Below the pieces are notes generated by a model. The model saw nothing but the letters and a program-made list of their open reading frames with translations. It made no database searches and was not told the DNA's origin. 64,000 bases of DNA, taken from IMG/VR virus record IMGVR_UViG_3300025930_000007, positions 1 through 64,000 of that record; one strand, given 5' to 3'. Every line of letters starts with the position of its first letter. Positions within the stretch are counted from its first letter, which is position 1. The translations under genes were made by a program, and so were the position numbers. This document shows positions 39,837 to 62,195 of the stretch, piece after piece.

Positions 39837-40241
39837 ATGAAACTGAAGATTCAGATGGGTGCCCGCGAACTGGTCGAGCTCGGCCGCGGCTGCGGCCCCG
39901 GGCAGATCATGCGCCACGGCTTCACCCGAAAAGACGGCGTATACGTTCCTCCCGGCTGCGTGAAAGATCAAGGCGCTAGGGGCCGGACGCCGGCGTCCAA
40001 GAGGATCCTCCCTCAGCCGAAGGCCGGCATGCTGAAGGGCTGGGAAGCCAAGAAGAGCGCAGAGCAGCGTCATGCCTCTCTCCGCAAGGCCGTCAAGGCG
40101 GAAGGCTGCCGCAACGTCATCAATCGGCTCAGCCTCGAGCGTGGCTTCACGAAGACAACATCTCCCAAGACTGCGGCGACTGCCAAGAAAGATTGGCAGT
40201 GGCTTCGTAAGCAGGGCTTCTGCAAGCTCAAGACCAAATAG
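39837..40241 (+). CDS. Basic protein resembling a conserved giant-virus (NCLDV) hypothetical family
   Basis: 'CGPGQIMRHGFTRKDGV..CVKDQG..RHASLRKAVK..RL..KKDWQWL' pattern recalled from NCLDV proteins; unverified. Confidence 0.65.
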   Translation: MKLKIQMGARELVELGRGCGPGQIMRHGFTRKDGVYVPPGCVKDQGARGRTPASKRILPQPKAGMLKGWEAKKSAEQRHASLRKAVKAEGCRNVINRLSLERGFTKTTSPKTAATAKKDWQWLRKQGFCKLKTK

Positions 40242-40253: not shown

Positions 40254-41417
40254 ATGTTGAAGGCGCGTCCTCTCATCCAGAACTCCCTGTTTCCGCTGCG
40301 GCGTGGGCCGTCCTTGGGAGCCGAGATGCTGATCGAGCTCGGCCAAACGGTCGCGTCTCCCAGTGTGCCTCCGCCTACCGCCCCCAGGGTTTCTACTCCT
40401 ACGACGCCTGCAACTAAGACTCCGCAACTGGTTCAGATCTCGGCGGATGAAGGAAACCTCGTCATCAAGACCGTCGAGAACATCGTCAACTTCTCCCAGG
40501 ATTTCCCTATCGAGTTCACTTCCTACTGTCCCACCGACCGCTGGCAGGAGACGCTGACCCAGGTCGGCACCTGGAGCCATGAGGTCGAGCGTCAGATCAA
40601 GGCGGGGGCCCAGACGGTATCGGTTCCGGCGGAGGCGATCTTCCGTCTGGTGGATCTCGAGAAATGCGCCACCGCGGCACGGGAGTCTCGCTTGACGGCG
40701 GCAAAATGGGCCTTCAGCCTGTCCGCCGGCGGGACGATAGCCAACGTCCTCTTCGGGCTGTCATGGATCACGGTACCGACGTACATCGCGGGCCTTGCAA
40801 TTCTCTTCGGAGGCCCGTTGATTGCGAGAATGAGGGCTCAGCCGGAAGATCCCTACAAGCCGTCGATCGGTTGCACGAAATCTCATCAGCTCTCGGGTTG
40901 CGCGGCGCCATACGAGAGCGAAGAAGAGCAAAAGATGATCAAGCTGGTGGAGCGCGTCATTCTGGTCGAACGGCCAGGCCGACGCGAACACTGGTGGGGA
41001 TCGGTCGACTGCAATCCGGGTGGCGCCCAGGCGTCGACGTGTCTCAAGAAGGGACGCCTTCGCGTTCGTATCGAAGGCTGGGAGGGCGACACGGTGAATC
41101 CGGCTCCGGGATGGGAGTTCTCCACGGACTGCGAGGAAGGCTCTCTCAACGTGATCGCCGTCATGGAGACTGGATCCGAAATCCGCGAGACTGGTTTCGG
41201 AGCGGTTCCGGAGAAATCCAGGCACAAGGAAACCTACTGGGTCGAATATATCGGACCGAAGACCGGCGGCATTATCCGTCGCGCCGGTCCCTTCGGCTGT
41301 CCAATGGATACCCGCGATCATGCCATCGATGACGGCGGGATCACGAAGAAGGGCCAGGACGGCGATTACGTGCTTCTCAACATGGAAGGCGAGGAAGTGC
41401 CGGTGCCCAAATCATGA
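40254..41417 (+). CDS. LGA/LGQ-leader membrane protein, family B, with Cys-containing C-terminal domain
   Basis: 'PSLGAEMLIELGQ'; two TM segments. Confidence 0.75.
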   Translation: MLKARPLIQNSLFPLRRGPSLGAEMLIELGQTVASPSVPPPTAPRVSTPTTPATKTPQLVQISADEGNLVIKTVENIVNFSQDFPIEFTSYCPTDRWQETLTQVGTWSHEVERQIKAGAQTVSVPAEAIFRLVDLEKCATAARESRLTAAKWAFSLSAGGTIANVLFGLSWITVPTYIAGLAILFGGPLIARMRAQPEDPYKPSIGCTKSHQLSGCAAPYESEEEQKMIKLVERVILVERPGRREHWWGSVDCNPGGAQASTCLKKGRLRVRIEGWEGDTVNPAPGWEFSTDCEEGSLNVIAVMETGSEIRETGFGAVPEKSRHKETYWVEYIGPKTGGIIRRAGPFGCPMDTRDHAIDDGGITKKGQDGDYVLLNMEGEEVPVPKS

Positions 41418-41917
41418 CGACGTTCGCGAAAGGTCTTGCAAGCGGAACGATTCAGGCTCCGCCGAAGACATCCTGGTGGCCGCGTCATACGCGGACCATG
41501 ATGAGGTACCTGGCGTTGTCCGGGGCAAAGACACCGAATGCGAAGATCGAGATTCAGGGTAATATGCAGAAGGGCGCCCAGGAATGGGAGGCCATGATTC
41601 CAAAGGTCGCCAAGCAAGGGCTGATGATCGAACATGCCGCTCTCGAGATCGCACTGGTTGATGCCGTGCGCCTGAATAAAGAGGCGGATATCGATGGTAT
41701 CGGCAGAAAGCTGCTGGACAATGCCGGTCAGCTTGCGGCGGTCCTGGGGATCGCGGTCAAGGAGTTTCCGGAAGAGCATTTCAGGCGGCTGTTCATGGAT
41801 CACGTAGGTTTGTATGCTGGTAGTGTTCGAAAGAAAATAGAAGGCGTGGTGGTGAACAGCGCCGAAATCGAGTCGAACATGCTGCAGCTTGCGGACTTTA
41901 CCGCAGAGTGGCTTTAG
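41414..41917 (+). CDS. Helical-bundle hypothetical protein
   Basis: ATGA overlap; spaced His residues in helices. Confidence 0.7.
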   Translation: MTTFAKGLASGTIQAPPKTSWWPRHTRTMMRYLALSGAKTPNAKIEIQGNMQKGAQEWEAMIPKVAKQGLMIEHAALEIALVDAVRLNKEADIDGIGRKLLDNAGQLAAVLGIAVKEFPEEHFRRLFMDHVGLYAGSVRKKIEGVVVNSAEIESNMLQLADFTAEWL

Positions 41918-41926
41918 AGGGACGAT

Positions 41927-43651
41927 ATGGCTGAATACTTCATGGGACAAGAGCTCATCCAGGGCGAGCTCCCGGCCAATTCGCCCAAGCCCGCTGCGAC
42001 TCCGCCGGAAGGCGTGATCATGACCGATGTCTCCCGGGACGGATGGAGCCGCCGATACATCTACATCGCCATGGCCGGAGCCGCTCCGGAGGAAATTCTG
42101 ATCTCGGAGACTCCTCCGACCCAGAAAGCTCGCGTTTCCGGCGCCGCGGTGGCGGTCGAAGATGATTTCTCTTCTTCGATGGAAGGCGTTTCGGTACCTG
42201 ACGGCGTGATTCTGCCGGAAGGTGCCGTGCTTCCCGAAAATGCCGTCTTCAGCGGCATCCCTTCTCAGGGCAGGCCCACCATGGGACGGCCGGCGGTTCC
42301 GACTGCTGCTCCTAGAATCGCGGTTCCCGTCCAGGGGCAGAATGTGCCGCTGGTCGCGCGTCAGAATCCGCTGCCGCAGCCTCAGCAGTCTTTCCGCACG
42401 AATATTGCGGTTGCGGCTCCTTCGTCGGTTCCAACGGTGAGCATCCAGAAAGCAGCTCCTCCGGCTCCCGTCATGGTTCAGCCGCAAGGCCCTCTTCCTG
42501 GAGTGGAAGTTCAGGTGCCCTTCATCCAGACGCCGATCGACAAGTCTACAGACATACCGAGCAACGTCAGGATCTCGAATTCCATCGACTCTCTCAGGCC
42601 GGCCGTGGCTCAATCCGTTATGGATTCGCCTCGTCCGGTCCAGCAGGAGCGCCCCGCCATGATGCTCGGGCAGATCTCCAGGCCTCTTCCACTGACCACC
42701 CAGGAGGGCAGGAAGGACACTTATCCGGTCAGCAACCCGATCGCGCCGGCAGGGCCCATGGGCGGAATGAGCCAGATCGGAGGATCTCCGGGCTTGAGCC
42801 AGAATCAGATCCCGCTGCGGCATATGGGTCAGACCCCTGCGCCTGCTCCCGCGCCTGCTCCCGCGCCTGCTTCGACGGGCGGCAAGTGCCCGGGTGCTGT
42901 GGAAATGCCGGATGGCACCACGATCGAGCCGGATCAGTACATCACGCTGGCAGCGCTCTGCGAGCTGATGCCGTTCCTCGCGAGCACGCTCACCGACCTG
43001 CAGGCCAAGAGCCTGGCTCCAGGACAGAAGGTCTCCGTCGTCGGCCAGCAGCCTAATGGCCAGACCGTCGTTCCCACGTCCGCGTCGTTCGGTCCAGCCG
43101 GACAAGGCGGCCCGATGGGCCGTGCCGTGGGTGGCATGGGGAGCTTCGGCGGCGGCGGTGGGTCGCCCGGCCCGGCAGGATCTCAGGGCCCGAGGGGCCT
43201 CACCGGTCCCGCGGGACCGGGCAGCATCACGGAACCTCCCGTCGTCAAGGTGGACGGAGACTTCGTGGCAGGCCCCGGCGCCTTCGTCCCGGTCCCCGGC
43301 ACGGCGGTGCCGTTCTCGATGTCCACGGCAGGGGTCGCCGAAGTCAAGGTCCTGGTCACTCTCGGCACCGGGCCCACACAGCAAGCCGAGAACGTGCAGC
43401 TCGGGATCCGAGTCAACGGAACCGACTACCCGCTTACCGTTCGCCTTCTTCACACGTTCGCGGCCAACGTCGGGGAGTTCGACATCGGCCAGTGCTTCCT
43501 CTTCCCGATCCAGCTCCCGGCCGGCAGCTACACCGCGGAATTGCTGCTCCGTGGTCTCCTGCCGGGGGAATTCGGCGGCGGCACCGGCGCTTCGGCGGCG
43601 GTGAACGCGAATCCGTCGATCCCGCTTATCATCACTGTTTCCCATAACTAG
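41927..43651 (+). CDS. Fibre-like protein: long Pro-rich pro-region with MGQ/LGQ sites, divergent anchor, mini-collagen and head
   Basis: 'EMPDG..LAALCELMPFL' resembles the fibre anchor; GPAGSQGPRGLTGPAGPG. Confidence 0.75.
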   Translation: MAEYFMGQELIQGELPANSPKPAATPPEGVIMTDVSRDGWSRRYIYIAMAGAAPEEILISETPPTQKARVSGAAVAVEDDFSSSMEGVSVPDGVILPEGAVLPENAVFSGIPSQGRPTMGRPAVPTAAPRIAVPVQGQNVPLVARQNPLPQPQQSFRTNIAVAAPSSVPTVSIQKAAPPAPVMVQPQGPLPGVEVQVPFIQTPIDKSTDIPSNVRISNSIDSLRPAVAQSVMDSPRPVQQERPAMMLGQISRPLPLTTQEGRKDTYPVSNPIAPAGPMGGMSQIGGSPGLSQNQIPLRHMGQTPAPAPAPAPAPASTGGKCPGAVEMPDGTTIEPDQYITLAALCELMPFLASTLTDLQAKSLAPGQKVSVVGQQPNGQTVVPTSASFGPAGQGGPMGRAVGGMGSFGGGGGSPGPAGSQGPRGLTGPAGPGSITEPPVVKVDGDFVAGPGAFVPVPGTAVPFSMSTAGVAEVKVLVTLGTGPTQQAENVQLGIRVNGTDYPLTVRLLHTFAANVGEFDIGQCFLFPIQLPAGSYTAELLLRGLLPGEFGGGTGASAAVNANPSIPLIITVSHN

Positions 43652-43659: not shown

Positions 43660-44091
43660 GTGGCCACGCTCGTTGAGAAGACCGTCCTGGTGAACAGCAA
43701 AGTCCAGGATCTCTGGGGTCTGTTCATGGACCTTCGCCGGGCGGATTTCAAGGTCCGCAACGTGGGCATGGACGTTCGGGGGACTTACGTTCACCTCGAG
43801 CTCAATGAGGAGAAGGATCCGACGCCGATCGTGGAAGCCTGGGTTGGGAAAGAACCGGCAAAAAGTTCTCTCTTGGTGAAAGAGATCCGTCAAAAGGAGC
43901 TCGAAAAGGTGAAGGAAGAAGAGCAGATCCGCCTTCAGGCTCAGATCGAGGCAGAACGAAAGGCAGAAGCAGCGAAGCAGAGATCGCCGGAAATAGTCGT
44001 GAATAGTGCGCCGCCGGAAGTCTCCGTCAAGGAGACGGAAACCGCGGAGAAAGTTGGAATCTTGAAGAGGATCTTCAGGAAATTCTTCTAA
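43660..44091 (+). CDS. Hypothetical protein with coiled coil
   Basis: AGGAGG SD, GTG start. Confidence 0.7.
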   Translation: MATLVEKTVLVNSKVQDLWGLFMDLRRADFKVRNVGMDVRGTYVHLELNEEKDPTPIVEAWVGKEPAKSSLLVKEIRQKELEKVKEEEQIRLQAQIEAERKAEAAKQRSPEIVVNSAPPEVSVKETETAEKVGILKRIFRKFF

Positions 44092-45144: not shown

Positions 45145-45576
45145 ATGAAAACACTCTTCACGACCGGCTTCAGCAGACCCTCCTTCAACCCGATGCTGGG
45201 ACAGGAGATCATCACGTCTTATGATGAAGGCCAGTCTTCGGGAGGGATCCCGAATCTGTATACTTCCGTCGATCAGGGTCCTGCAGCGACAACTGTCCCA
45301 GGGCTTGTGACCGATCGGGATCTTTATAAGTCTCCCAGTTCGACGGCATCCACGGACTTTGGGAAAATCCTTCAGGAGATGGTCAAGGCCGGTTCGGCGA
45401 GCTATGCCGGCTACACGAAGGCTCAGATCGCTGAAGCTGCAGCCAAGCAGAAGGCTGGCCTTCCTACAGGACTTCCGAAAGTGCTTCCGCAACCTTCCGG
45501 CATCAGCCCCAATACGGTATTCTTGGTCGGAGGACTCGCGGCGGCGGTGATCATTGCGGTAATCGCGGCAAGCTAG
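45145..45576 (+). CDS. LGQ-leader membrane protein
   Basis: 'FNPMLGQ'; C-terminal TM. Confidence 0.75.
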   Translation: MKTLFTTGFSRPSFNPMLGQEIITSYDEGQSSGGIPNLYTSVDQGPAATTVPGLVTDRDLYKSPSSTASTDFGKILQEMVKAGSASYAGYTKAQIAEAAAKQKAGLPTGLPKVLPQPSGISPNTVFLVGGLAAAVIIAVIAAS

Positions 45577-45577: not shown

Positions 45578-46996
45578 ATGCATTCTATCTCTGGACGTCA
45601 CATGTTCTGGCAGGCTCCCGCTCAAGGCGGGAGCCTTCGGACAATCCCATTTCGTCAGGGCGGTCGTTCGGTCATGCTGGGCGGTGGAATGTTCATGGGC
45701 CAGATGCCCATCAACAGGCTCGACCAGGTCAGCATTCCGGCGATCATCGGACGTATCCAGATCGAGCCCGCGGTGCAGCAATATCTCGATGATCTGAATA
45801 AAGAGAATGCGGGCTTGGGCGCGATCTGGGCTGCCAGACCTCAACCAAAGCCGGTACCGAGTTTCCCCCCGATGACCGAAGCGGAAAAACAAATCCTCTT
45901 CGAGATCTCCAAGAATCCGACCGATGAGGAGCTGAAGGACCTGGCAACCATCGACAGTCTCTTCAGCCAGAATTTCCAGGCGGATTATCTTACGACAAAC
46001 GAGGTTTGCTATTACGCGGACAGCGGCAAACTGCCGGGGGTACGCGTGTTTGCCAAGGCGCCAGCTATCATTCCGACTACGGGGCAAGAAGGTGCCGAGT
46101 ACGCTGTTGCCCATTATTTTAATCCCAAACCTATTCCAATGTTCGGTAAATGGGGCGGGAAGAAGCCGCCTCCCCCTCCGGATAAATCCTTTACCAACGA
46201 CAAGTTCTGGTGCCCTGATCCATCCACTACGGAACCGACGCTATTCCTGGATCATGTGCGGCAACTTGGAAAGTTCGGGTCCTTCGCCCAGATGTTCGGG
46301 ATCGATGTGAACAAGACATGGGGGCAGATCAAGTTACAGACAAAGAATGGCTTGATCGTCCTGAACGTGAAATCGTCGTATCCTCTTCCTCCGCCGCTCG
46401 ACATGGCGCCAGATTTTGTCTGGAACATGGCCGCGGTTCCTCATCTTCCGGAGATGGTGAACCTCGGCGTTGTCGTCGATCCGGAGGCCTTCCGCTCCTG
46501 GTATACGATGGCAGTGCTCGAGAAGTACAACGACGCGGCCGATGCTATCATTGCCGAACAGAAGAGGAAGGCGAAGAAAGCAAAACGCAAGGCTATCCTG
46601 AAGGCCGTCGGCTTCGCAATCGCTGGAGTCGTTCTTTCCTTCATCGTTCCAGCCATCATTGCAGCAGCCGTCGCCGCGATCAAAGCGGCCGTGGACGTCT
46701 ACATCCAGGCCAAGCAGCGCGCGGAAGCCGCGAAGGCGATGGCCGAGGCCGCCAAGATGTTCGAGGAGGATGCTCCGGCCTTTGCAGCCGAAGTCCAGAA
46801 GACCGCCGACATGATGGATTATGCCGTGGCGCAGGAAGAGGCGAATGCGCCGCTCACTCAAGAGCAGCTTGATGCGATTCAAGAGGTCAAGGATAACCCT
46901 GAGCCCGGCACCGGCCCCACGACGGGACAGGCCCTCGTGACGGGCGGCGCCGCAGCGGGAATCATCGCGGCGATGATCGCCATCTTTCATCGGTGA
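45578..46996 (+). CDS. Large MGQ-leader membrane protein
   Basis: 'GGMFMGQ'; internal and C-terminal hydrophobic helices. Confidence 0.75.
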   Translation: MHSISGRHMFWQAPAQGGSLRTIPFRQGGRSVMLGGGMFMGQMPINRLDQVSIPAIIGRIQIEPAVQQYLDDLNKENAGLGAIWAARPQPKPVPSFPPMTEAEKQILFEISKNPTDEELKDLATIDSLFSQNFQADYLTTNEVCYYADSGKLPGVRVFAKAPAIIPTTGQEGAEYAVAHYFNPKPIPMFGKWGGKKPPPPPDKSFTNDKFWCPDPSTTEPTLFLDHVRQLGKFGSFAQMFGIDVNKTWGQIKLQTKNGLIVLNVKSSYPLPPPLDMAPDFVWNMAAVPHLPEMVNLGVVVDPEAFRSWYTMAVLEKYNDAADAIIAEQKRKAKKAKRKAILKAVGFAIAGVVLSFIVPAIIAAAVAAIKAAVDVYIQAKQRAEAAKAMAEAAKMFEEDAPAFAAEVQKTADMMDYAVAQEEANAPLTQEQLDAIQEVKDNPEPGTGPTTGQALVTGGAAAGIIAAMIAIFHR

Positions 46997-47637
46997 GGTT
47001 CATGAACACTATTTTTCTCGGCGGAGTTCAGCCGCGATCTGGCTTCCGGATTGGCCAGCGCTTCGTGATGGGACAGACTCTCACGAAAGCGGACCGCGAT
47101 CACTATCTCGTCGCCGTCAATCGCGCCCTCTCGGAAGCGGATGAGATCGATGCGTGGCTGCTCGCCAATCCGCTCGCAAAGCTGAAGCCCACGGAACTGG
47201 AGATGGCCCAGGGTTCCGATGTCGTCATCTCTCCATTCTTCACCAAGTGGATCAACTTCCAAGCTCAGCGGCCGGGCATGGTCGCCTTCCGGGATCGTCT
47301 TCAGAATGAAGACCCCAGCACTTGGGGATCTCTCTCGGATGCCGAGCACAAGATCTTCGGTTGGGTCAACGTAGTCGACCAGATCTATGGTTCATTCAAG
47401 GCGGATCCCAAGAATCTGACTGCTGGAAGATGGGTAGCTGGCGTAAGGCAGCCGGATCCGGTTTCCACGGGTGCCGCGACGACAGCACCTGCCATGCCCC
47501 TCGAGCCCGTCACAGTCCTGGGCTATGAGCTTCCTCCGACGATGTTGGGGATGCCTACGAAAGTAGCCCTGGTAGTGGGGACCATGGGTTTGATCAGTAC
47601 CGGAGTAGCTCTCTGGGCCCTATTCCGGAAGAAGTAA
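46993..47637 (+). CDS. MGQ-leader membrane protein
   Basis: 'RFVMGQ'; C-terminal TM + RKK. Confidence 0.75.
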   Translation: MRFMNTIFLGGVQPRSGFRIGQRFVMGQTLTKADRDHYLVAVNRALSEADEIDAWLLANPLAKLKPTELEMAQGSDVVISPFFTKWINFQAQRPGMVAFRDRLQNEDPSTWGSLSDAEHKIFGWVNVVDQIYGSFKADPKNLTAGRWVAGVRQPDPVSTGAATTAPAMPLEPVTVLGYELPPTMLGMPTKVALVVGTMGLISTGVALWALFRKK

Positions 47638-47642
47638 GGCTC

Positions 47643-48077
47643 ATGGGCTGCAGCCCTGGCGCTATTTCCTTCGGAAAAGAACTCAGCCAATTCCTTTCCA
47701 ACCTCCTCTACATGAAAGAATGGTGGACCCATGGAGGATGTTGGACGCTTGCCCAAGCACTTCACGAATACCTGGGAGACGATCGCACGGAGCTCTGGGG
47801 TATTGGAAGTCCATTTGCCGGAACTGCGTATCACGTGGCAGTGAAGGCGGATGACTGTTTCTTTGATGCGGACGGAGCTTCTACGCTTGAGCAGATTCTG
47901 AAGCGCTGGAAAAAGAAGTTTCCGGGGCAATACTTGATTGCGAGGAAGCTTTCGGACAATGAAAAGAAGACCCTTCTCTGTAAAGATTCCGAAGACTTCG
48001 CTGTCGAGGAAATGGTCGATCAACTGACGTTAAAGCTAGGCCCATCCGAACTCCTCTGGAGGCGATTTTTCTCTTAA
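47643..48077 (+). CDS. Small protein with papain/transglutaminase-like Cys-His-Asp pattern (candidate protease)
   Basis: 'GGCWTLAQALH', 'YHVAV', 'FFDADG'. Confidence 0.6.
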   Translation: MGCSPGAISFGKELSQFLSNLLYMKEWWTHGGCWTLAQALHEYLGDDRTELWGIGSPFAGTAYHVAVKADDCFFDADGASTLEQILKRWKKKFPGQYLIARKLSDNEKKTLLCKDSEDFAVEEMVDQLTLKLGPSELLWRRFFS

Positions 48078-48893: not shown

Positions 48894-49460
48894 ATGAATC
48901 TCGGAACTGTGCGCATGATGCCGATCTCGGGTAAGAGCGCCCGGCCTTCTCTGTTCGGCTTTTCGGCCGATCAGTCGAGGGGATTCTTCGGCTTAGGCGC
49001 GATTGAAACCCCCTCCGATTGGTATCAAAGGGCCAAAGAAGGACTGGCAAAATACGATGATCTCTTCGCTCGTGTAGGCCGGATCGCCGATCAGACGGAA
49101 CGCCAGAACATACAGAATTGGCTCGGATCTCCGATCGTCGACGGCACTCCTGCAAACGCCGCTCAGCAGGTGTTGACGGATATCCGGGAAGACGTGGAGT
49201 CGTTCATTCCTGCGAACGTCAATGCCTATCAGGTATCGAGCAGAACGGAGAAGATCCAGAAGCTCGAATCGATCAATCATGATTTCGAGGCGATGGTGGC
49301 CAACGCATCGGCCAAGGCGGGTGTCTTGCCGGTGACCCACGGCATCGTCCCTCCTCCTCAGCCTGATCCCGGTCCGTCATGGCTCCTTCCGGTCGTGGTC
49401 GTCGCCGGAGCCCTGGGGATCGCGACGCTAGTGACCTACGTCTACGGAGGGAAGGCTTAG
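48894..49460 (+). CDS. LGA-leader membrane protein, family A
   Basis: 'WYQRAKEGLAKYDDLFAR..ESFIPANVNAY'. Confidence 0.8.
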   Translation: MNLGTVRMMPISGKSARPSLFGFSADQSRGFFGLGAIETPSDWYQRAKEGLAKYDDLFARVGRIADQTERQNIQNWLGSPIVDGTPANAAQQVLTDIREDVESFIPANVNAYQVSSRTEKIQKLESINHDFEAMVANASAKAGVLPVTHGIVPPPQPDPGPSWLLPVVVVAGALGIATLVTYVYGGKA

Positions 49461-50027
49461 ATGAATCTCTCCGGAGCTCCGATCGGAAGAAACGCCAACA
49501 TGGGCGGCTCCATGTTCCATAGGTCCGGTTTTGCGCCGGTCATATCCTCTCCCGTGCAGAAGCGCCGGCTGGGAGAGGACGAGCAGAAGTGGTTCACCCG
49601 GGCCAAGGCTGCAGTAGCGGCTTATGACGATCTCTGGACTCGCACGCTGCTGATCAACGACAAGACCTATCGCGAACAGCTTGCGGCGAAGTACCACCCG
49701 AAGCCCGAAGATCAGAATGGGGCATTGTATCGCCGCAATTCGGTTGCGTACAAAGTCTCCGAAGCGGAAAGCTTTACGCCGGTCAATTATAAGATCTTCG
49801 AAGACACCCAGCAGCAGGATAAAGTCACCAAGCTGGAAGAGCTGAACTCCGACTTCCGCAAGGACGTCGAGTACGGTGAGAAGACCTACGGTCTTCTTCA
49901 GGCGCCGGCGATTATTGAACAGACGACGACAACTGCTCCGCCGACGGAGGTTCCTGGTTGGCTGATTCCAGCCGGGATCGGTCTTGGAGCTTTGATTATC
50001 GGTGCTCTGCTGTTCGGCGGAGACTAG
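49461..50027 (+). CDS. LGE-leader membrane protein, family A
   Basis: 'WFTRAKAAVAAYDDLWTR..ESFTPVNY..TYGLL'. Confidence 0.8.
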   Translation: MNLSGAPIGRNANMGGSMFHRSGFAPVISSPVQKRRLGEDEQKWFTRAKAAVAAYDDLWTRTLLINDKTYREQLAAKYHPKPEDQNGALYRRNSVAYKVSEAESFTPVNYKIFEDTQQQDKVTKLEELNSDFRKDVEYGEKTYGLLQAPAIIEQTTTTAPPTEVPGWLIPAGIGLGALIIGALLFGGD

Positions 50028-50036
50028 GAGGAATTC

Positions 50037-50621
50037 ATGATCCCATTGCGGATGGCTTCGATCGGTGGTTTCAACGGTCCCCGCGGAACGATGTTCCACG
50101 GCAGCGCGACTGATTCTTTCAGCGTGGGTCGGATCTCCCTGGGCGAATCCGATCTGGGCGTGAACACGACCGGACTGGCTCGCTATGAGCTGGCGAAGAA
50201 GGAACTCGCTCAGTACGACAGTCTGGTCGAGCGGGTCAAGCGTATCGGCAACAAGGCTGCCCGCGAGCAGATCATCGATACCTACGGCCTGAGCGAGCCG
50301 GACAACAAGGACAAGTCGCTCTACGCGCGTAACGTGGTCGCGTCCGACCTCGCGAACGCGGAGAGCTACACGCCCATCAACTATGACATCTACACGGCTC
50401 CTGGACCCGCCAAGAACCGTCCTGGCAGGCTCCAGGATTGGAACTCGAGTTTCGCAAAAGACGTCAAGTACGCGGAAGACACGTACGGCATCCTGCCGGA
50501 ACCCCAGGTGATCGAGCGGACGACCACCGTCAGCCAGGTTCCGGCCTGGGTGATGCCGGTCACGATCGGTGCGCTCGCGGTGGCTGGTCTGGCTGCCTTG
50601 GGAGTCTTCAGCAAAAAGTAA
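50037..50621 (+). CDS. LGE-leader membrane protein, family A
   Basis: 'YELAKKELAQYDSLVER..ESYTPINY..TYGIL'. Confidence 0.8.
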   Translation: MIPLRMASIGGFNGPRGTMFHGSATDSFSVGRISLGESDLGVNTTGLARYELAKKELAQYDSLVERVKRIGNKAAREQIIDTYGLSEPDNKDKSLYARNVVASDLANAESYTPINYDIYTAPGPAKNRPGRLQDWNSSFAKDVKYAEDTYGILPEPQVIERTTTVSQVPAWVMPVTIGALAVAGLAALGVFSKK

Positions 50622-51413: not shown

Positions 51414-51932
51414 ATGCGCTTCGACCTCGTCGCCTTCCTGGGAGGCCTGACTGTTGGAGCCGCGGCTGCGGCTCTATACGGTGCCACACGGAGCACGAAG
51501 CTCGGCTGGAGTGGCGGCGGTGCAGGCGGTGGTCCTGGCGGCGGCGGTAGCTTCGGAGGCAGTCCCAGCGGCTCGGGGGGCTCATCCTATGCCCCCGGTG
51601 GTACAGGAGTCTATTCTGGACCGCCTGGACCCTTCGGTGGAGGGTTCATGGGACCTAGCGTCCTGGAATCGACGCCTTCTGAGGGAGAAGGAGAGATCGG
51701 GCCGATCGTTTCCGTTCCTCCGATCATTCATGACGGAGATGGTAACGGAATATTCGGAGGCTCATTCTTTGGGGTCAACGTGGCCCCTTGGTTCTGGCCT
51801 CTGAACATCGTGCCCCGGAACGACGAGATCATCTGCAAGAAGATTCCAGGCGATCCTGAAGAGACGATGGTATGTAAACGCAGATATCCGGTTCGAGCGG
51901 TGGCTTGGGGGCCACCCGCCGGCTGGCTCTAG
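51414..51932 (+). CDS. N-terminal TM, Gly-rich protein
   Basis: N-terminal hydrophobic helix, 'TKLGW', Gly-rich linker. Confidence 0.7.
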   Translation: MRFDLVAFLGGLTVGAAAAALYGATRSTKLGWSGGGAGGGPGGGGSFGGSPSGSGGSSYAPGGTGVYSGPPGPFGGGFMGPSVLESTPSEGEGEIGPIVSVPPIIHDGDGNGIFGGSFFGVNVAPWFWPLNIVPRNDEIICKKIPGDPEETMVCKRRYPVRAVAWGPPAGWL

Positions 51933-54715: not shown

Positions 54716-55669
54716 GTGATGAACGAATGGCTTGGTCCTGTTTCTTTGAGGCTCGTTGATCGTGGTCCTCTCTTTGGGGGCTTCGGATCTCGTATCCAGG
54801 ACATCCGCCAGCCACAGCCTTTTCTCGGCCAGGCAAGATTGAAGCAGTCCTATGAACTTGGACGGCCGGTCGCGCATCTGGATCAACCTCCGGACTGCTG
54901 CAATAGTCCGGATGGAACCAAATGCTTCGATCACTCGACCGGCGAATGCATCAATACCTGGAACAGCACTGTGGCAACTCCAAATGCTCCTGATTGCGTT
55001 CAGGACACTCGTGGAGAATTGGTTCATCCCTATTGCTATACCCCTCCTGTAGCTCCCACTCGCATGGAAGGAAGAGTTCGTAGAGTTCCTTTCTTCTCTC
55101 TGGGGGCTTGGGTCAACGATAAACCGGCGAAGTGCTGCAATAGGACTCATCCGGATGGAACGGCCTATCTGGAATGCTGCGAACCACTATGGAATGGTCC
55201 GGGATCAGATCCGAGCTTCCCGAGCTGCGACTCTCCGGATAATCCCTGCCCCTCCACGGGAGCCGCCCCGACTCCGACCCCGACCCCGACTCCGACTCCG
55301 ACTCCGACCCCGACTCCGACTCCGACCCCGACTCCGACTCCGACCCCCACCCCAACGCCAACACCGACACCTACACCAAGCCCGACCCCGACGTCTACAA
55401 CTGGTCCAATTCCAACGGATAATACGACCTCGGCTGGCAATGAACCGATACCGGCTACCGGAGGCGGCTCTTTTGTTCCCGTGCTTCCGCCTCGGCAGAG
55501 CATGACGACGGCATCTCCTCCGACCGGAGCCTTCCCTGGTCAACCATTTGCCGCCATGCGCCCTCCTCAGAAGCCTGTTCCGATCGCCAAGGCTCCTGCT
55601 CCACTTCCGCCGCCATGTCCGCTTGGACCGGTCCCTCTTCGTAAGTGGATCGAAGGCTGCATGGGGTAA
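54716..55669 (+). CDS. LGQ-leader Cys-rich protein with a (PT)n stalk
   Basis: Two CCN-containing Cys-rich modules; about 20 PT repeats. Confidence 0.75.
   Translation: MMNEWLGPVSLRLVDRGPLFGGFGSRIQDIRQPQPFLGQARLKQSYELGRPVAHLDQPPDCCNSPDGTKCFDHSTGECINTWNSTVATPNAPDCVQDTRGELVHPYCYTPPVAPTRMEGRVRRVPFFSLGAWVNDKPAKCCNRTHPDGTAYLECCEPLWNGPGSDPSFPSCDSPDNPCPSTGAAPTPTPTPTPTPTPTPTPTPTPTPTPTPTPTPTPTPTPSPTPTSTTGPIPTDNTTSAGNEPIPATGGGSFVPVLPPRQSMTTASPPTGAFPGQPFAAMRPPQKPVPIAKAPAPLPPPCPLGPVPLRKWIEGCMG
55268..55393 (+). repeat. Hexamer tandem repeat (CCGACY)n encoding Pro-Thr
   Basis: Directly visible; degenerate toward the 3' end. Confidence 0.85.
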
Positions 55670-57398: not shown

Positions 57399-57472
57399 CG
57401 GGGCGTGTTGTAGCGGCAGCAAGCGACGTTCCCAACGTTGAGGTGTGGGTTCGACTCCCATCGCCCCGTCCA
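57399..57472 (+). tRNA. tRNA-Gly(CCC)
   Basis: CGACG-TTCCCAA-CGTTG; GTTCGA; CCA. Confidence 0.9.
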
Positions 57473-57480
57473 ATTTTGCT

Positions 57481-57600
57481 GTGAATCAAGACCGTGGGTC
57501 ACCCAAGGGACGCTGCAAGGTGACATCTGGCCCGGCAGCCGTGGAGTCCTCCCGGCCGGGGAATAACTGAGGACCTAGGCGTCCCACTATCTTGATTCAC
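57481..57600 (+). ncRNA. Unidentified end-closed structured RNA
   Basis: GTGAATCAAGA..TCTTGATTCAC terminal stem between tRNAs. Confidence 0.5.
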
Positions 57601-57602
57601 AT

Positions 57603-57673
57603 AGGCCACGATCCAGCGATCAGCTTGGTCTCCAAAACCGAGCAGTGGGGGGCGGCACCCCGGTGGCCTGCCA
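57603..57673 (+). tRNA. tRNA-Trp(CCA), atypical D and T arms
   Basis: AGGCCAC/GTGGCCT acceptor; CTCCAAA loop; CCA. Confidence 0.7.
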
Positions 57674-57681
57674 GAATTCAT

Positions 57682-57755
57682 GGTCCCTGAGTATGTCGGC
57701 AGTACGCTACCTTGTCACGGTAGAAGGACGGGTTCGACTCCCGTAGGGATCGCCA
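57682..57755 (+). tRNA. tRNA-Asp(GTC)
   Basis: CTACC-TTGTCAC-GGTAG. Confidence 0.9.
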
Positions 57756-57763
57756 AAAGAAAA

Positions 57764-57840
57764 CCCCCGGAGGCCGAAGTCGTGGAGGCGCCGGCTTGTC
57801 ACGCCGGAGAAAGCGGGTGCGACTCCCGTCCGGGGGGCCA
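57764..57840 (+). tRNA. tRNA-Asp(GTC), second copy
   Basis: CCGGC-TTGTCAC-GCCGG. Confidence 0.85.
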
Positions 57841-57856
57841 ACCTTAGTCTCGATAC

Positions 57857-57931
57857 TCCCAGATCGTCTAACTGGTAGGACGACAGACTCTGAATCTGTA
57901 AATTGGGGTTCGAATCCCTATCTGGGAACCA
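57857..57931 (+). tRNA. tRNA-Gln(CTG)
   Basis: ACAGA-CTCTGAA-TCTGT. Confidence 0.9.
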
Positions 57932-57934
57932 GTC

Positions 57935-58249
57935 TTATGCGCCGAGATGCTTGGCGATCAGGGCCTCGAGCTGTTCCCTGGTCATCTCGCCTTCAGTCCG
58001 ATGGACCTCCTGGCCCTCCTTGAAGAAGACGAGTGCCGGCAGGCCGTCGATGTCGTAGCCGTTGGCCGACTTCTTGCACTGGTCGATCCGGGCGCCCACG
58101 ATCAGGACGGAATCGTTGTAATCGTTGGCAGCCTGCTCGATCACGGGCTTGAAGTCGACGCAATGGGTGCATTCGGGGTGCCAGAAGTCGACGATCGCGA
58201 GCGGCGCCCCCAGGACTTCGCTGAAGTTCTTGTCCGTCACGGAAAGCAT
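57935..58249 (-). CDS. Thioredoxin family protein
   Basis: 'IVDFWHPECTHC', 'IDGLPALVFFKEG..R..G'; AGGAG SD. Confidence 0.85.
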   Translation of the reverse strand: MLSVTDKNFSEVLGAPLAIVDFWHPECTHCVDFKPVIEQAANDYNDSVLIVGARIDQCKKSANGYDIDGLPALVFFKEGQEVHRTEGEMTREQLEALIAKHLGA

Positions 58250-58281
58250 TCGAATTCTCCTAATCTCCAAGCATTATACAA

Positions 58282-58356
58282 GCCGGTCTAGCTCAGCAGT
58301 AGAGCGCCCGTCTGAAAAGCGGGAGGTGGCGGGTGCGACACCCGCGGCCGGCACCA
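58282..58356 (+). tRNA. tRNA-Phe(GAA)
   Basis: CCCGT-CTGAAAA-GCGGG. Confidence 0.9.
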
Positions 58357-58363
58357 AATATTT

Positions 58364-58438
58364 GGGGGCATCGTCCAATTGGTAGGACACCAGCATGGCA
58401 TGCTGGGGATCGGGGTTCAAGTCCCCGTGCTTCCACCA
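58364..58438 (+). tRNA. tRNA-Ala(GGC)
   Basis: CCAGC-ATGGCAT-GCTGG; G3:U70. Confidence 0.9.
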
Positions 58439-58446
58439 GAAAACTT

Positions 58447-58522
58447 GCGCAGGAGAGGCACGGTGACCTCACCAGTCTCATAAGCTGGGGATAGCGGGTT
58501 CGACTCCCGCCTGTCGCTACCA
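58447..58522 (+). tRNA. tRNA with CAT anticodon (Met or Ile2), bulged acceptor stem
   Basis: CCAGT-CTCATAA-GCTGG; GTTCGA; CCA. Confidence 0.7.
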
Positions 58523-58538
58523 AGATTCCCTTATACGA

Positions 58539-58615
58539 CGCGGGGTGGAGTAGCCCGGTAACTCGCCAGGCTCATAACCTGGAAACCGCAGGTTCAAATC
58601 CTGCCCCCGCAACCA
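58539..58615 (+). tRNA. Initiator tRNA-fMet(CAT)
   Basis: CGCGGGG..CCCCGCAACCA with C1:A72 mismatch. Confidence 0.9.
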
Positions 58616-58622
58616 AAAATTC

Positions 58623-58748
58623 GGAGGCTGACTGACGAGGGTACTTCGCTGGTTCAATTCCAGCCTGCCCGACTAGGGCGCTCGGATCCCGAGCTCCCCA
58701 GCGGGCAGGCGCCCGATGCCTGGGCACCCCTTGTCTCCAATCGCCTCC
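58623..58748 (+). ncRNA. Y-RNA (YrlA)-like RNA 1
   Basis: GGAGGC/GCCTCC closing stem, GAGGGTACTTC, then T arm, acceptor-like stem and D-like arm. Confidence 0.6.
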
Positions 58749-58757
58749 AAAATCTTC

Positions 58758-58887
58758 AGGGGCTGCAGAGCGAGCTTACTTCACCAGACTCTTAATCTGG
58801 AGGACCTGGTTCGAGTCCAGGCTTCGGCCGAAAGGTCGATGTGGTGTATCGGTAGCACACTCAGTGGCTTGTTCGACAATTGCCCCT
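58758..58887 (+). ncRNA. Y-RNA-like RNA 2 containing a circularly permuted tRNA-Lys(CTT)-like module
   Basis: AGGGGC/GCCCCT stem, TTACTTC, anticodon arm, T arm, GAAA-capped acceptor stem, D arm. Confidence 0.65.
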
Positions 58888-58897
58888 ATAAAAATTC

Positions 58898-59082
58898 GCG
58901 GGCTGATGGATCGAGGTTACTTCGCCCTACAAAACCCCCGAAAAGGAAGGTCCGTCGAACCTTCCTCTACCGCGAAAGCGAACGGGTTGAGCGTGAGGTG
59001 CTTGTGGTAACACGCCGGCGCAAGCCGGAGAAGGAGGTTCGACTCCTCCCAAATCGACATGGCCTTGGCCGTAATTGCCCGC
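58898..59082 (+). ncRNA. Y-RNA-like RNA 3
   Basis: GCGGGC/GCCCGC stem, GAGGTTACTTC, D arm + GCAA-capped stem + T arm. Confidence 0.6.
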
Positions 59083-59091
59083 ATAATATTC

Positions 59092-59182
59092 GAGCGCTGA
59101 CTAGCGGCGTTACTTCGGAGCCTGGGCTCGAAGCCCGACACGGCGAAAGCCGTGGGCAAGTCGCTGCTTAATGATTGCGCTC
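59092..59182 (+). ncRNA. Y-RNA-like RNA 4 (short)
   Basis: GAGCGC/GCGCTC stem, GCGTTACTTC, two small hairpins. Confidence 0.55.
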
Positions 59183-59186
59183 ACAA

Positions 59187-59261
59187 GGGGCCATAGCTCA
59201 GCAGGGAGAGCGCCGGTTTCGCATACCGGAGACGCGAGTTCGATTCTCGCTGGTTCCACCA
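59187..59261 (+). tRNA. tRNA-Ala(CGC)
   Basis: CCGGT-TTCGCAT-ACCGG; G3:U70. Confidence 0.9.
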
Positions 59262-59282
59262 AAATTTAGCATCATCAGACCT

Positions 59283-59358
59283 GGGCCGGCATGTACCGTA
59301 GTGGCGACACTGCCTTGCAAGCAGCGTGTGGTGGGTGCGACTCCCATCCGGTCCACCA
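59283..59358 (+). tRNA. tRNA-Ala(TGC)
   Basis: CTGC-CTTGCAA-GCAG; G3:U70. Confidence 0.8.
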
Positions 59359-59365
59359 AATATTC

Positions 59366-59492
59366 GAGAGCTGCAGATTGAGGTTACTTCTCTACCACTT
59401 ACGAGACGTGGTGTAGCGGTCTGCACACCGGCCAAAAGCCGGAGGTGGTCGTCCGACTCGACCCGTTGTTGCCTTGATCATCAATTGCTCTC
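59366..59492 (+). ncRNA. Y-RNA-like RNA 5
   Basis: GAGAGC/GCTCTC stem, GAGGTTACTTC, D arm + anticodon-less stem + T-like arm. Confidence 0.6.
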
Positions 59493-59496
59493 AAAT

Positions 59497-59583
59497 GGGG
59501 TCGCTTGGAGAGAAGGATCTCCACCTGTCTGTAAAACAGGCGTCCGTTTGGACTAAGCGGCGCGATACCGCACGGCCCCACCA
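59497..59583 (+). tRNA. tRNA-Tyr(GTA)
   Basis: CCTGT-CTGTAAA-ACAGG; long variable arm. Confidence 0.8.
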
Positions 59584-59584
59584 C

Positions 59585-59660
59585 TGCCTCGTCTGTCTAA
59601 TTGGTAGGACGCCGGTCTTTGAAGCCGGAGATCTCGGTTCGAATCCGAGCGAGGCAACCA
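59585..59660 (+). tRNA. tRNA-Gln(TTG)
   Basis: CCGGT-CTTTGAA-GCCGG. Confidence 0.9.
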
Positions 59661-59673
59661 AAGCTCTCTAGAT

Positions 59674-59749
59674 GCGGCCGTGGTGTAGCTTGGTAGCACG
59701 AGAACTTGCCATGTTCTAAGCACGGGTTCAAATCCCGTCGGCCGCTCCA
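59674..59749 (+). tRNA. tRNA-Gly(GCC)
   Basis: AGAAC-TTGCCAT-GTTCT. Confidence 0.9.
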
Positions 59750-59760
59750 ATATTTCCCAT

Positions 59761-59834
59761 CGGCTCGTAGTTCAACAGCAGAACGTTCGCTTGATAAGCG
59801 AAAAACGCAGGTGCGACTCCTGCCGGGCCGACCA
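59761..59834 (+). tRNA. tRNA-Ile(GAT)
   Basis: TTCGC-TTGATAA-GCGAA. Confidence 0.85.
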
Positions 59835-59837
59835 TAC

Positions 59838-59913
59838 GGTGGCCGTGGTGTAATGGTTTGCACATCTGGTTGTGGCCCAGAGGGTGCGGGTTCGATCCCC
59901 GTCGGTCACCCCA
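59838..59913 (+). tRNA. tRNA-His(GTG)
   Basis: G-1, TCTGG-TTGTGGC-CCAGA, C73. Confidence 0.9.
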
Positions 59914-59936
59914 AAAAATAATGCTACAATGGCTGG

Positions 59937-60134
59937 GTGCCATATGTAGAACCGTCCTGGCGACAATGGCCTCAGTGGAGATGGCTCTCCCGGACTCTTT
60001 GCTTCTTCGGAAACCATCACTGGATGAGGAGCAAAAGCCTCCAGAATCTTCCGATCGCCTGCGCGGTCTGCTCGAAGAAGACGAAGCATTTCAATACGTA
60101 CATCAAGCTCGCCAAGAAACACGCCGGGCTGTAG
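59937..60134 (+). CDS. Small Cys/His hypothetical protein
   Basis: 'LCFFGNHHW..CAVC'; its stop overlaps the tRNA-Pro 5' end. Confidence 0.5.
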   Translation: MPYVEPSWRQWPQWRWLSRTLCFFGNHHWMRSKSLQNLPIACAVCSKKTKHFNTYIKLAKKHAGL

Positions 60135-60200
60135 GGTAGCGGCCAACCCGCCTGCTTCGGGAGCAGGAAATCGCGAGTTCGAATCTCGCCAGCCCGACCA
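60125..60200 (+). tRNA. tRNA-Pro(CGG)
   Basis: CCTGC-TTCGGGA-GCAGG. Confidence 0.9.
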
Positions 60201-60203
60201 TTC

Positions 60204-60280
60204 CAGGGACATGGGGAGATAGCGCCCCACCTGTTTCGGATACAGGCATAGGCCCGGTGCGAGTCCGGGGTCCCTGACCA
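60204..60280 (+). tRNA. tRNA-Pro(CGG), divergent
   Basis: CCTGT-TTCGGAT-ACAGG (A37). Confidence 0.75.
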
Positions 60281-60289
60281 AAAACTCAT

Positions 60290-60366
60290 CAGGCACAGGG
60301 TCAGATAGCGGGCCGCCTGCCTTGGAAGCAGGAGATAGACTGGTGCAAGTCCAGTGTGCCTGACCA
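60290..60366 (+). tRNA. tRNA-Pro(TGG), divergent
   Basis: CCTGC-CTTGGAA-GCAGG (A37). Confidence 0.75.
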
Positions 60367-60379
60367 ATCTTTTTAATCT

Positions 60380-60455
60380 CGGGCTCAAGGGAAGGTAGCG
60401 TCCCGCCTGTTTGGGGTACAGGAGCAGGCCGGTGCAAGTCCGGCGAGCCCGACCA
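60380..60455 (+). tRNA. tRNA-Pro(GGG)
   Basis: CCTGT-TTGGGGT-ACAGG. Confidence 0.8.
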
Positions 60456-60462
60456 AAATCAT

Positions 60463-60543
60463 CCGGAGGCAGGTCGGCTGACGGCTGGCTGGGTCGCTCC
60501 CAGCATGACAGCCGGTTGGGTTCGGTTCCCGAACTCCGGTCCA
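60463..60543 (+). ncRNA. tRNA-sized CCA-ending RNA without a normal cloverleaf
   Basis: CCGGAG/CTCCGG-T-CCA ends; one long internal hairpin. Confidence 0.4.
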
Positions 60544-60617
60544 CGGCGCGTATTTCAATAGCAGAATATCTGCGTGACATGCAGAAGATGGGGGTGCGAT
60601 TCCCTCCGCGCCGACCA
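60544..60617 (+). tRNA. tRNA-Val(GAC)
   Basis: TCTGC-GTGACAT-GCAGA. Confidence 0.85.
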
Positions 60618-60640
60618 ATCTTGTTTGCTATGATTTCGCC

Positions 60641-60838
60641 ATGGGACCCAACAAAGACGAAATCCTTCGGAACGCCAAGAAGATGGCCGAGGAAGAAAAG
60701 AAGCGACGTGCCAGCATAGCGACGGAGAAGCCCCTTGGGAGAATGCAGTCCAGGATGCCGATCGGCTGCTGGATGTGGATCCTGGCCGCGGCCGCGCTGA
60801 TCATCTGGCTCATCAAAAAGTACGGACCTGGGATATAA
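60641..60838 (+). CDS. Small membrane protein
   Basis: Charged N-terminus plus TM 'WMWILAAAALIIWLI'. Confidence 0.6.
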   Translation: MGPNKDEILRNAKKMAEEEKKRRASIATEKPLGRMQSRMPIGCWMWILAAAALIIWLIKKYGPGI

Positions 60839-60947
60839 TCCTTGCGACGGCTGAGATGGACCCCTAACTCTGGTGGCGGGGTTTCGGGTCGCGCGTCGTG
60901 AGGGTGTGTGCCTTCACGGAGGGTGTTTCGGGGCCCCGCTCCCATTT

Positions 60948-61023
60948 GCCGGCGTAGTTTAGCAGCTCTGAATGCCAGTTCGGTAAACTGGAGGTGTGGG
61001 GGCAGCACCCACCGCCGGCTCCA
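60948..61023 (+). tRNA. tRNA-Thr(GGT), atypical (C33, non-canonical T loop)
   Basis: CCAGT-TCGGTAA-ACTGG. Confidence 0.75.
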
Positions 61024-61194
61024 GAAATAAAAAACCACGGCGACAGGCCGTGGCATTTGAGGGATCGGCGAATCCCGAAATTGGGATTCGTGCGAACAAG
61101 ATACGGGAAACAATAGCGAGGTGTCCAGAAAAGAAAAAGCCCGGGGAACACCCCCGGGCCTCGAGCGGGATTCGGTGCTTGCAGTGTACCACAT

Positions 61195-61269
61195 GCTGGC
61201 ATAGCTCAATAGTAGAGCACCTGTTTTGTAAACAGGCGGTTGCCGGTGCAAGTCCGGCTGCCAGCTCCA
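61195..61269 (+). tRNA. tRNA-Thr(TGT)
   Basis: CCTGT-TTTGTAA-ACAGG. Confidence 0.9.
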
Positions 61270-61281
61270 AATATTCATCAC

Positions 61282-61355
61282 GCCGGCCTAGTTCAACAGT
61301 AGAATGCTCGCTTCATAAGTGAGAGATCCCAGGGCAGCTCTGGGGGCCGGTACCA
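61282..61355 (+). tRNA. tRNA with CAT anticodon (Met or Ile2)
   Basis: CTCGC-TTCATAA-GTGAG. Confidence 0.75.
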
Positions 61356-61387
61356 TTTCATCTACCCAAAGGAAGGATAGGAACACC

Positions 61388-61564
61388 GTGAAGTACATCG
61401 TGGAGGCCCGCGCCGGCGACCGCTGGGTGACGCTGGGCCAGCCGTACATCCTCAAGGAAAAGGCCATGGCGGCCGAGGAAGCGGCTCTGGAAAGCACGCT
61501 CTGGGAAGACGCCAGGATCCTGGTCGTGAACGATCGGCAGCAGATCGTCAAGATCATCGACTGA
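61388..61564 (+). CDS. Small hypothetical protein
   Basis: GTG at 61388 after AGGA. Confidence 0.6.
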   Translation: MKYIVEARAGDRWVTLGQPYILKEKAMAAEEAALESTLWEDARILVVNDRQQIVKIID

Positions 61565-61568
61565 CCTC

Positions 61569-61660
61569 GGAGGGGTTGGTACATAGGCAGGTCCGCTCGT
61601 TTCGAAAACGAGTAGGTCTCGAAAGGGGCCTTGCCGGTTCGACTCCGGTCCCCTCCTCCA
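61569..61660 (+). tRNA. tRNA-Ser(CGA)
   Basis: CTCGT-TTCGAAA-ACGAG; long variable arm. Confidence 0.85.
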
Positions 61661-61721
61661 GAATTCTCGATTGATGCAGCGCCTCGAGGCCGGTATACTT
61701 TCCTTATTGGGGGGTATCAAG

Positions 61722-61973: not shown

Positions 61974-62093
61974 GGCGGCGAGAATCCATCTGCTCATGCG
62001 ACGGAGATTCTCTAAAAAGAAACACCCAGGGCTCTTCGAAGGAAGAGTCCCGGGTGCGAGAGAGGGAAACCTTTCGGTACTGTAATTATACCC

Positions 62094-62184
62094 GGAGATG
62101 AAGGCAGTGGGCATGCCACCACGTCTTGAAAACGTTGGACCCGGGAAACCGGGGCGGTGGGTTCGAGTCCCCCCGTCTCCGCCA
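62094..62184 (+). tRNA. tRNA-Ser(TGA)
   Basis: ACGT-CTTGAAA-ACGT; long variable arm; G73. Confidence 0.8.
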
Positions 62185-62195
62185 AAAATCAGTGC

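Follow-up and report, generated by a model that had tools for sequence, protein, structure and literature searches.

What does a small soluble protein do in the midst of genes for membrane proteins whose N-terminal leaders end in [LM]G? The question is raised by a gene at 47643–48077 in the first 64 kb (positions 1–64,000, the window) of the IMG/VR virus record IMGVR_UViG_3300025930_000007 (G000), which is 266,490 bp long and estimated to be 92% complete. A reading made from the bare nucleotides (the sequence-only reading) had proposed that the product could be a Cys-His-Asp enzyme that cuts the [LM]G sites of its neighbours. Here the product, P0001, is recognised as a divergent YunG-like protein with a near-invariant Cys33-His64-Asp75 triad on a predicted papain/transglutaminase-type fold, and its assignment as the leader-cutting enzyme is unsupported. 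What is new is this divergent member and the invariant triad in an already known, uncharacterised family. The gene and the sites discussed below are as follows.

47643–48077, + strand: P0001 gene, ATG to TAA, stop codon included; 144 aa, YunG-like Cys-His-Asp protein
47712–47918, + strand: putative catalytic core (residues 24–92), the part common to all remote relatives and PF24591
47739–47741, + strand: Cys33 codon (TGT), predicted nucleophile, in the motif W-x-x-G-G-C-W-x-L-A-x-A-L
47832–47834, + strand: His64 codon (CAC), predicted general base, opening strand 64–69
47865–47867, + strand: Asp75 codon (GAT), predicted third member of the triad, closing strand 72–75, in the motif [FY]-x-D-x-D-G
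47649–47651 and 47979–47981, + strand: Cys3 and Cys113 codons

The motifs GGCWTLAQAL, YHVAV and FFDADG occupy residues 31–40, 63–67 and 73–78 of P0001, respectively. The protein is acidic (pI 5.6) and soluble, with a best 19-residue Kyte–Doolittle mean of 0.69 that predicts no membrane span, and it is leaderless, [LMI]G[QAEGT] being absent from residues 1–60. A 166-aa open reading frame (ORF) on the opposite strand, 47523–48023 (−), overlaps the gene, and conserved homologs were found only for the + frame. Like 41366–43645 (−), it belongs to the long antisense ORFs of the window, which are typical GC-rich artefacts. No promoter or terminator signal around the gene exceeded the shuffled expectation.

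Comparison with Pfam gave a single sub-threshold match for P0001, to Phage_YunG-like (PF24591; E 0.0054, 17 bits against a gathering cut-off of 27 bits), in which profile positions 19–64 align to residues 28–80, while PHROGs gave no useful match. The same family was met among the relatives. A word-index search found six clusters with 64–99% identity, each of 144 aa, and six of the seven sequences in the close-homolog alignment, P0001 among them, matched PF24591 (best E 2e-4). An exhaustive profile search found 230 cluster representatives at E ≤ 1e-3, mostly of 110–165 aa and with residues 25–92 of P0001 as the common core, 14 of them at E ≤ 1e-10. PF24591 was matched by 25 of 80 remote relatives (best E 2.9e-6) and was the only family that recurred. 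In the ESM Atlas, a search by features returned YunG-like clusters at 0.94–0.97, those annotated PF24591 or PF24585 scoring 0.94–0.95, and a search by shape returned clusters carrying PF24591 or PF24585 at template modelling (TM) scores of 0.59–0.76. By way of these intermediate sequences and by shape, P0001 belongs to the YunG-like superfamily, as a divergent member that lies below the curated PF24591 threshold.

Residue conservation was examined in two alignments, one of 80 sequences with 22–35% identity to P0001 and one of 157 sequences aligned to a hidden Markov model (HMM) of those 80. In the smaller alignment Cys33, His64 and Gly78 are invariant, and Trp28, Gly31, Gly32, Ala37, Ala39 and Asp75 are conserved in at least 90% of the sequences. 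The larger one gave nearly the same picture: Cys33 is present in all 154 sequences aligned at that position, His64 in all 157, and Asp75 and Gly78 in 156 of 157 each. In a single sequence such a Cys-His-Asp pattern would carry little weight, and the triad is regarded as more than chance because it is kept family-wide. A second cysteine pair is also frequent, one residue lying in a C-x-P near the N-terminus and the other in an x-C-P further on: of the 48 sequences aligned at the first position 32 have Cys3, and 82 of 157 have Cys113. The two may be linked as a disulfide, bind a metal or contribute to the substrate cleft.

The structure of P0001 predicted by AlphaFold2 from the 80-sequence alignment has a mean predicted local distance difference test (pLDDT) score of 90.8 and a predicted TM score of 0.86. 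It consists of helices 5–20, 24–44, 82–92, 105–111, 117–132 and 135–142 and strands 50–55, 64–69, 72–75, 78–80 and 99–102. In agreement with the sequence-only reading, which had placed the His and the Asp on adjacent strands, His64 opens strand 64–69 and Asp75 closes the next strand, 72–75. The GGC string had been placed at a helix start, and Cys33 is indeed on a helix in the model. Its placement at the start is tentative, however, since DSSP assigns the helix to 24–44 with Cys33 inside it and away from the first turn, and confidence in the model is lowest at residues 21–30 (mean pLDDT 69).

An exhaustive structure search returned Cys-His-Asp(/Asn/Glu) enzymes of the papain/transglutaminase-like superfamily in 26 of the 28 top rows. 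The matches include PMT-C3, OspI, NTAQ1 (3c9q), Ceg10, LapG, PeiW, AvrPphB and vasohibin, together with PatoxP, CPR-C4, SpvD, tegument-like deubiquitinases and TecA. A second look at the structure matches added Bacillus-type transglutaminase, PNGase and NlpC/P60. An AlphaFold model compared by Foldseek had been suggested as a check at the outset: the model is confident, and Foldseek gave no significant match in the PDB (none below E 0.26), the weak list being rich in cysteine proteases and deubiquitinases. Likewise, no Pfam peptidase or transglutaminase family was matched by P0001, its close homologs or the 80 relatives. With the triad near-invariant, the model confident and the structure matches so uniform, the earlier proposal of a Cys-His-Asp enzyme of the papain/transglutaminase-like type is supported, and the predicted fold is supported as that of a minimal thiol enzyme of this type.

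From the fold class together with the conservation we infer a chemistry for P0001, namely that of a thiol enzyme with activation by Cys33-His64-Asp75. In such a mechanism, Cys33 on the central helix would be deprotonated by His64 on the adjacent strand, and Asp75, one strand further on, would orient His64. The Cys33 thiolate would then attack an amide carbonyl, either of a peptide or isopeptide bond or of a Gln or Asn side chain in a protein, and the resulting thioester acyl-enzyme would be resolved by water or by an amine. The fold class spans acyltransferases and transglutaminases as well as proteases and Gln/Asn deamidases, and none of these is singled out by the data.

The role of P0001 was judged from the distribution of the family. 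YunG-like domains also sit inside polyvalent proteins of 1,700–5,000 aa, and the fusion proteins match PF24591 at the same segment. The domains that accompany the YunG-like domain are listed here.

P0092: YunG-like with Nuc_deoxyri_tr2, GNAT and ART-PolyVal
P0127: YunG-like with pentapeptide repeats, methyltransferase, Zeta toxin and Topo IB
P0134: YunG-like with GGACT, PARP and NUDIX
P0094: YunG-like with RadC
P0027: YunG-like fused to ART-PolyVal

ART-PolyVal was also found near the YunG-like gene at loci L004/L005 (L004:1886–2296) and, weakly, at L018 (3592–4083). The two domains may thus have a pathway or target in common; G000 itself gave no ART-PolyVal match in a six-frame search of the whole 266-kb record. 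The uncharacterised look-alikes in BFVD come from giant viruses and from many unrelated phages, among them several jumbo phages. When 50,697 phage records were searched by tblastn, P0034 gave one match, in virus Rctr197k, where the YunG-like domain lies in a 6.5-kb ORF (Rctr197k_045) adjoining terminase, while P0001 and P0087 gave none. A search of viral contigs with the homolog alignment A1 or with the 472-aa neighbour described below found no relatives. The effector domains of polyvalent proteins are delivered into the host by phages and conjugative elements (Iyer, Burroughs, Anand, de Souza and Aravind 2017, PMC5512222), and the pattern of fusions and ART-PolyVal neighbourhoods matches that of such delivered domains. 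With its small single-domain genes placed amid accessory genes and its copies that are one of many domains in polyvalent proteins, the YunG-like family has the behaviour of a mobile accessory module carried by phages and conjugative elements. On balance, we consider it probable, by a modest measure, that the role of P0001 is a general one in accessory functions or conflict and that its target is a host or phage protein. This role is ranked above that of a leader peptidase because of the family distribution among mobile accessory genes and polyvalent domains.

The alternative with the best claim beside this one is that P0001 is the leader peptidase of its tail-anchored neighbours, cutting between F/R-[LM]-[GSA] and [QEA]. 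The genes concerned are listed first.

45578–46996, + strand: 472-aa membrane protein whose conserved N-terminal leader ends in F-M-G-Q (context gene)
46993–47637, + strand: 214-aa tail-anchored protein with IGQ at residue 20 and MGQ at 26, directly upstream of P0001
25932–26405, 32428–33258, 35127–36244, 37369–40241 and 44095–55669: leader-bearing genes in the window
111273–112848, 131009–131554, 146269–147289 and 209026–209808: leader-bearing genes in G000

The neighbours were tabulated as a block of 21 + strand genes at 43.6–55.7 kb. A hydrophobic span (mean 1.5 or more) is present in 17 of the 21, mostly at the extreme C-terminus with a few basic residues behind it, and [LMI]G[QAEGT] occurs within the first 60 residues of 19, most commonly in the form R/F-[LM]-G-Q. 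Only P0001 and the product of 43660–44091 have neither, so that P0001 is a soluble, leaderless interruption of the run, as first described, though it is not the only one. In a crude ORF set, [LMI]GQ occurs at 6e-4 per residue, from which about 3–4% of proteins are expected to have one in the first 60–70 residues. The observed share in the block is more than half of the proteins, and the motif is considered real because this share is far above the expected one. The 472-aa family also supports this view, as its leader is conserved across 32 homolog clusters, down to 35% identity, with the site F-[LM]-[GSA]-[QERA].

The run of leader-bearing genes at 44–55 kb is present as the sequence-only reading had it, but such genes also occur elsewhere in the window and in the full record. 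Genome-wide, the class comprises about 15–20 or more small proteins (28 crude motif matches) that have a non-hydrophobic N-terminal leader ending R/F-[LM]-G-[QEA], and most of them carry a C-terminal transmembrane (TM) anchor with basic residues. In appearance these leaders resemble signals for targeting or cleavage, and such signals on tail-anchored membrane proteins are unusual in a tailed phage. The more unusual biology of this region thus lies in the genome-wide leader of the neighbours rather than in the P0001 gene.

Several observations weigh against an accessory thiol enzyme as the explanation for P0001, most of them on the side of the leader peptidase. Its ATG is 5 nt past the stop of the upstream leader-bearing gene (47637) on the same strand, and the gene, embedded in the module, is probably translationally coupled to that gene. 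Relatives with 64–69% identity keep the whole module syntenic with the gene in place. L021, an 84-kb contig of GCA_037024415.1 whose module is internally rearranged and encodes proteins 26–88% identical to those of G000, retains a 55%-identical copy in the module, just upstream of the homolog of 48209. At L022 the YunG-like gene is directly downstream of a homolog of the 472-aa protein, the only leader-bearing gene there; the YunG-like protein is 29% identical to P0001 (family HMM E 5e-34) and the neighbourhood, with thioredoxin, helicase and integrase, is unlike that in G000. The 472-aa homolog is the only gene found beside a YunG-like gene in two contexts (the G000 module and L022). Six-frame searches of the whole record gave no match to Peptidase_S77, S78, C48, C5, C39 or CLP_protease. 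Finally, neither the close profile nor the 80-sequence profile found a PDB chain at E ≤ 10, and a literature search found no YunG-like member with a tested function, the name being swamped by a surname.

Other points are compatible with leader cleavage. Genes with an [LM]GQ leader and a C-terminal TM span are located near the YunG-like copies at L003 and L017. Papain-type enzymes prefer a hydrophobic P2 residue, and a small P1 would suit them; the conserved site of the 472-aa family, with a small residue after Leu/Met, is compatible with this preference. The sequence-only reading had named an adenain/Ulp1-like protease elsewhere in the virus as a competing source of the processing, and none was found, PF02902 and PF00770 being unmatched in the record. 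P0001 is the only protease-like fold recognised in the virus, among one protein folded and about 30 others scanned. The same six-frame search gave no match to Capsid_NCLDV, Phage_capsid or Terminase_6N, and PHROGs assigned no structural or protease annotation to ten large ORFs outside the window. Most large ORFs of G000 are without a PHROG or Pfam match. Existing profiles cover this virus poorly, and the handful of models tried could easily have missed a divergent prohead protease.

The claim that P0001 cuts the [LM]G sites is nevertheless unsupported, as the family is broad, some of its loci have no leaders, and some leader proteins have no YunG-like gene beside them. The family extends far beyond the leaders, into polyvalent proteins and into the contexts of L004/L005 and L018, which are without such leaders. 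L002 and L003 come from the virus group of G000, their genes matching G000 genes scattered over 83–245 kb, and in both the YunG-like gene adjoins a homolog of the G000 gene at 123.2–123.8 kb, outside the membrane module. Conversely, L020, L023 and L024/L025 have homologs of the 472-aa protein, and a YunG-like gene is absent from the 8–21 kb fetched. Adjacency to leader genes is weak evidence because these genes are numerous and dispersed in the genome, and the leader cleavage itself is putative. A complex prediction for P0001 with residues 1–45 of the 45145–45576 product gave an interaction prediction score from aligned errors (ipSAE) of 0.01, which counts neither for nor against binding. Taken together, we regard the leader peptidase as unlikely. 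The wider proposal of a dedicated leader peptidase in an undescribed viral maturation system, with about 15–20 or more tail-anchored substrates, is less likely still. If true, it would provide the first function for the whole YunG-like family, and the polyvalent copies could act as processing peptidases.

P0001 might instead work like the arylamine N-acetyltransferases (NATs), which are among the enzymes that its fold resembles, and act as an acyltransferase or amidase on a small molecule; its substrate would then be a metabolite, an antibiotic or a nucleotide-derived signal rather than a protein. NATs, however, are three-domain proteins of about 270 aa, and P0001 comprises the minimal core alone; CoA-binding features were not identified in it and the matches are weak. 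We consider this improbable.

A Gln-directed enzyme acting on [LM]GQ, whether a protein glutaminase, an N-terminal Gln amidase or a transglutaminase, would deamidate the conserved Gln or cross-link it to a lysine. It would fit the best structure matches, which are protein-glutaminases, with NTAQ1 (3c9q) also listed, and Gln is the most common residue after [LM]G. The active-site motif of animal transglutaminases, G-Q-C-W-V-F-A, resembles GGCW-x-L-A and may serve as a lead only. In orthologs and paralogs of the leader proteins, Gln is swapped for E, R or A, and because Gln is replaceable a Gln-specific role is ranked low; it seems very improbable. That P0001 is a non-catalytic structural or binding protein, with the conserved residues serving folding or a metal, would accord with a family without any member of known activity and with the frequent second cysteine pair, but is hardly credible for Cys, His and Asp that are near-absolute in canonical order and on canonical secondary-structure elements despite 22–35% identity.

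Further genes of the module and its surroundings are the following.

39837–40241: 134-aa DUF5771 protein (E 3.8e-10), heading the module in all relatives including L021
48894–50621: three tandem paralogs of 188, 188 and 194 aa that share a helical domain and have C-terminal anchors, their leaders ending in LGA, LGE and LGE
54716–55669: 317-aa Cys-rich protein with (Pro-Thr)n of about 20 dipeptide units at about 55.2–55.4 kb and LGQ at residue 37; no membrane span

DUF5771 was the sole Pfam match among ten module genes. L023 and L024 also carry a homolog of the 214-aa protein, and the leader pair of 214-aa and 472-aa proteins is adjacent in both (L023:243–2263, L024:4576–6567), in reversed order compared with G000 and with no YunG-like gene nearby. 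In L024, two copies of the 48894–50621 paralogs adjoin this pair. The assembly of L021 calls an antisense ORF at 8482–9153 (+), and the YunG-like gene on the other strand, at about 8584–9010 (−), is uncalled.

Elsewhere in the window, 21 tRNA genes form an array on the + strand at 57399–62416, among them two tRNA-Pro(CGG) genes side by side, two for tRNA-Met and three for long-arm tRNA-Ser. A "tRNA-???" call with a four-base anticodon at 51634–51725, inside a Gly-rich ORF, is probably spurious. Collagen-like Gly-X-Y repeats occur in six or more proteins, at 1102–20918 and 41927–43651, and the PHROG "tail fibre" matches of these proteins are driven by the repeats. One of the collagen-like proteins, of 574 aa, has a beta-rich domain at its end, past the Gly-rich stretch. 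A 1,211-aa protein (26470–30105) has four tandem family-2 glycosyltransferase domains.

Compared with known viral maturation proteases, namely those of clan CE and the prohead proteases of T4 (gp21, S77) and HK97 (S78), P0001 has a likeness in the proposed role only, namely the removal of N-terminal stretches of virion proteins at short motifs that contain Gly or a small residue. The clan CE enzymes (adenain, poxvirus I7L, ASFV pS273R and Ulp1) have the order His, Asp/Glu, Cys, in contrast to Cys, His, Asp in P0001, and a clan CE protease is ruled out by this residue order and by the lack of a match to the family models. As for cleavage motifs, adenain cuts (M/L/I)-x-G-G before x, I7L cuts A-G before x, and the T4 enzyme cuts after L/I-x-E.

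Polyvalent proteins offer a closer comparison, with the difference that their YunG-like domain is embedded beside effector domains and P0001 is a single-domain protein. The peptidases of polyvalent proteins have been assigned to four superfamilies, zincin-like, assemblin-like, DD and LonC (Iyer et al., 2017, PMC5512222), and the main text of that study makes no mention of a YunG, papain, transglutaminase or thiol-peptidase domain. The closest known families are PF24591 (Phage_YunG-like) and PF24585 (YunG, named after Bacillus subtilis YunG), to which P0001 corresponds in its aligned core and its similar size (about 110–160 aa), the family occurring in phages and bacteria; compared with PF24591 it has extra helices at both ends (5–20 and 105–142). 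These families have no assigned function, and membership therefore gives no mechanism. The likeness that does bear on chemistry is to enzymes of the transglutaminase/papain fold: protein-glutaminase (2zk9, 8z3i), the deamidase effectors SseI, OspI, PMT-C3 and TecA, NTAQ1 and arylamine N-acetyltransferases, and, among proteases, LapG/BTLCP (Peptidase_C93), vasohibin, AvrPphB and PeiW, with an Atlas cluster carrying Peptidase_C93 reaching a TM score of 0.47 to P0001. P0001 shares with these enzymes the order of a Cys on a helix, a His on a strand and an Asp on the next strand, and this invariant triad gives a testable chemistry to a family widespread among phages, giant viruses, plasmids and bacteria.

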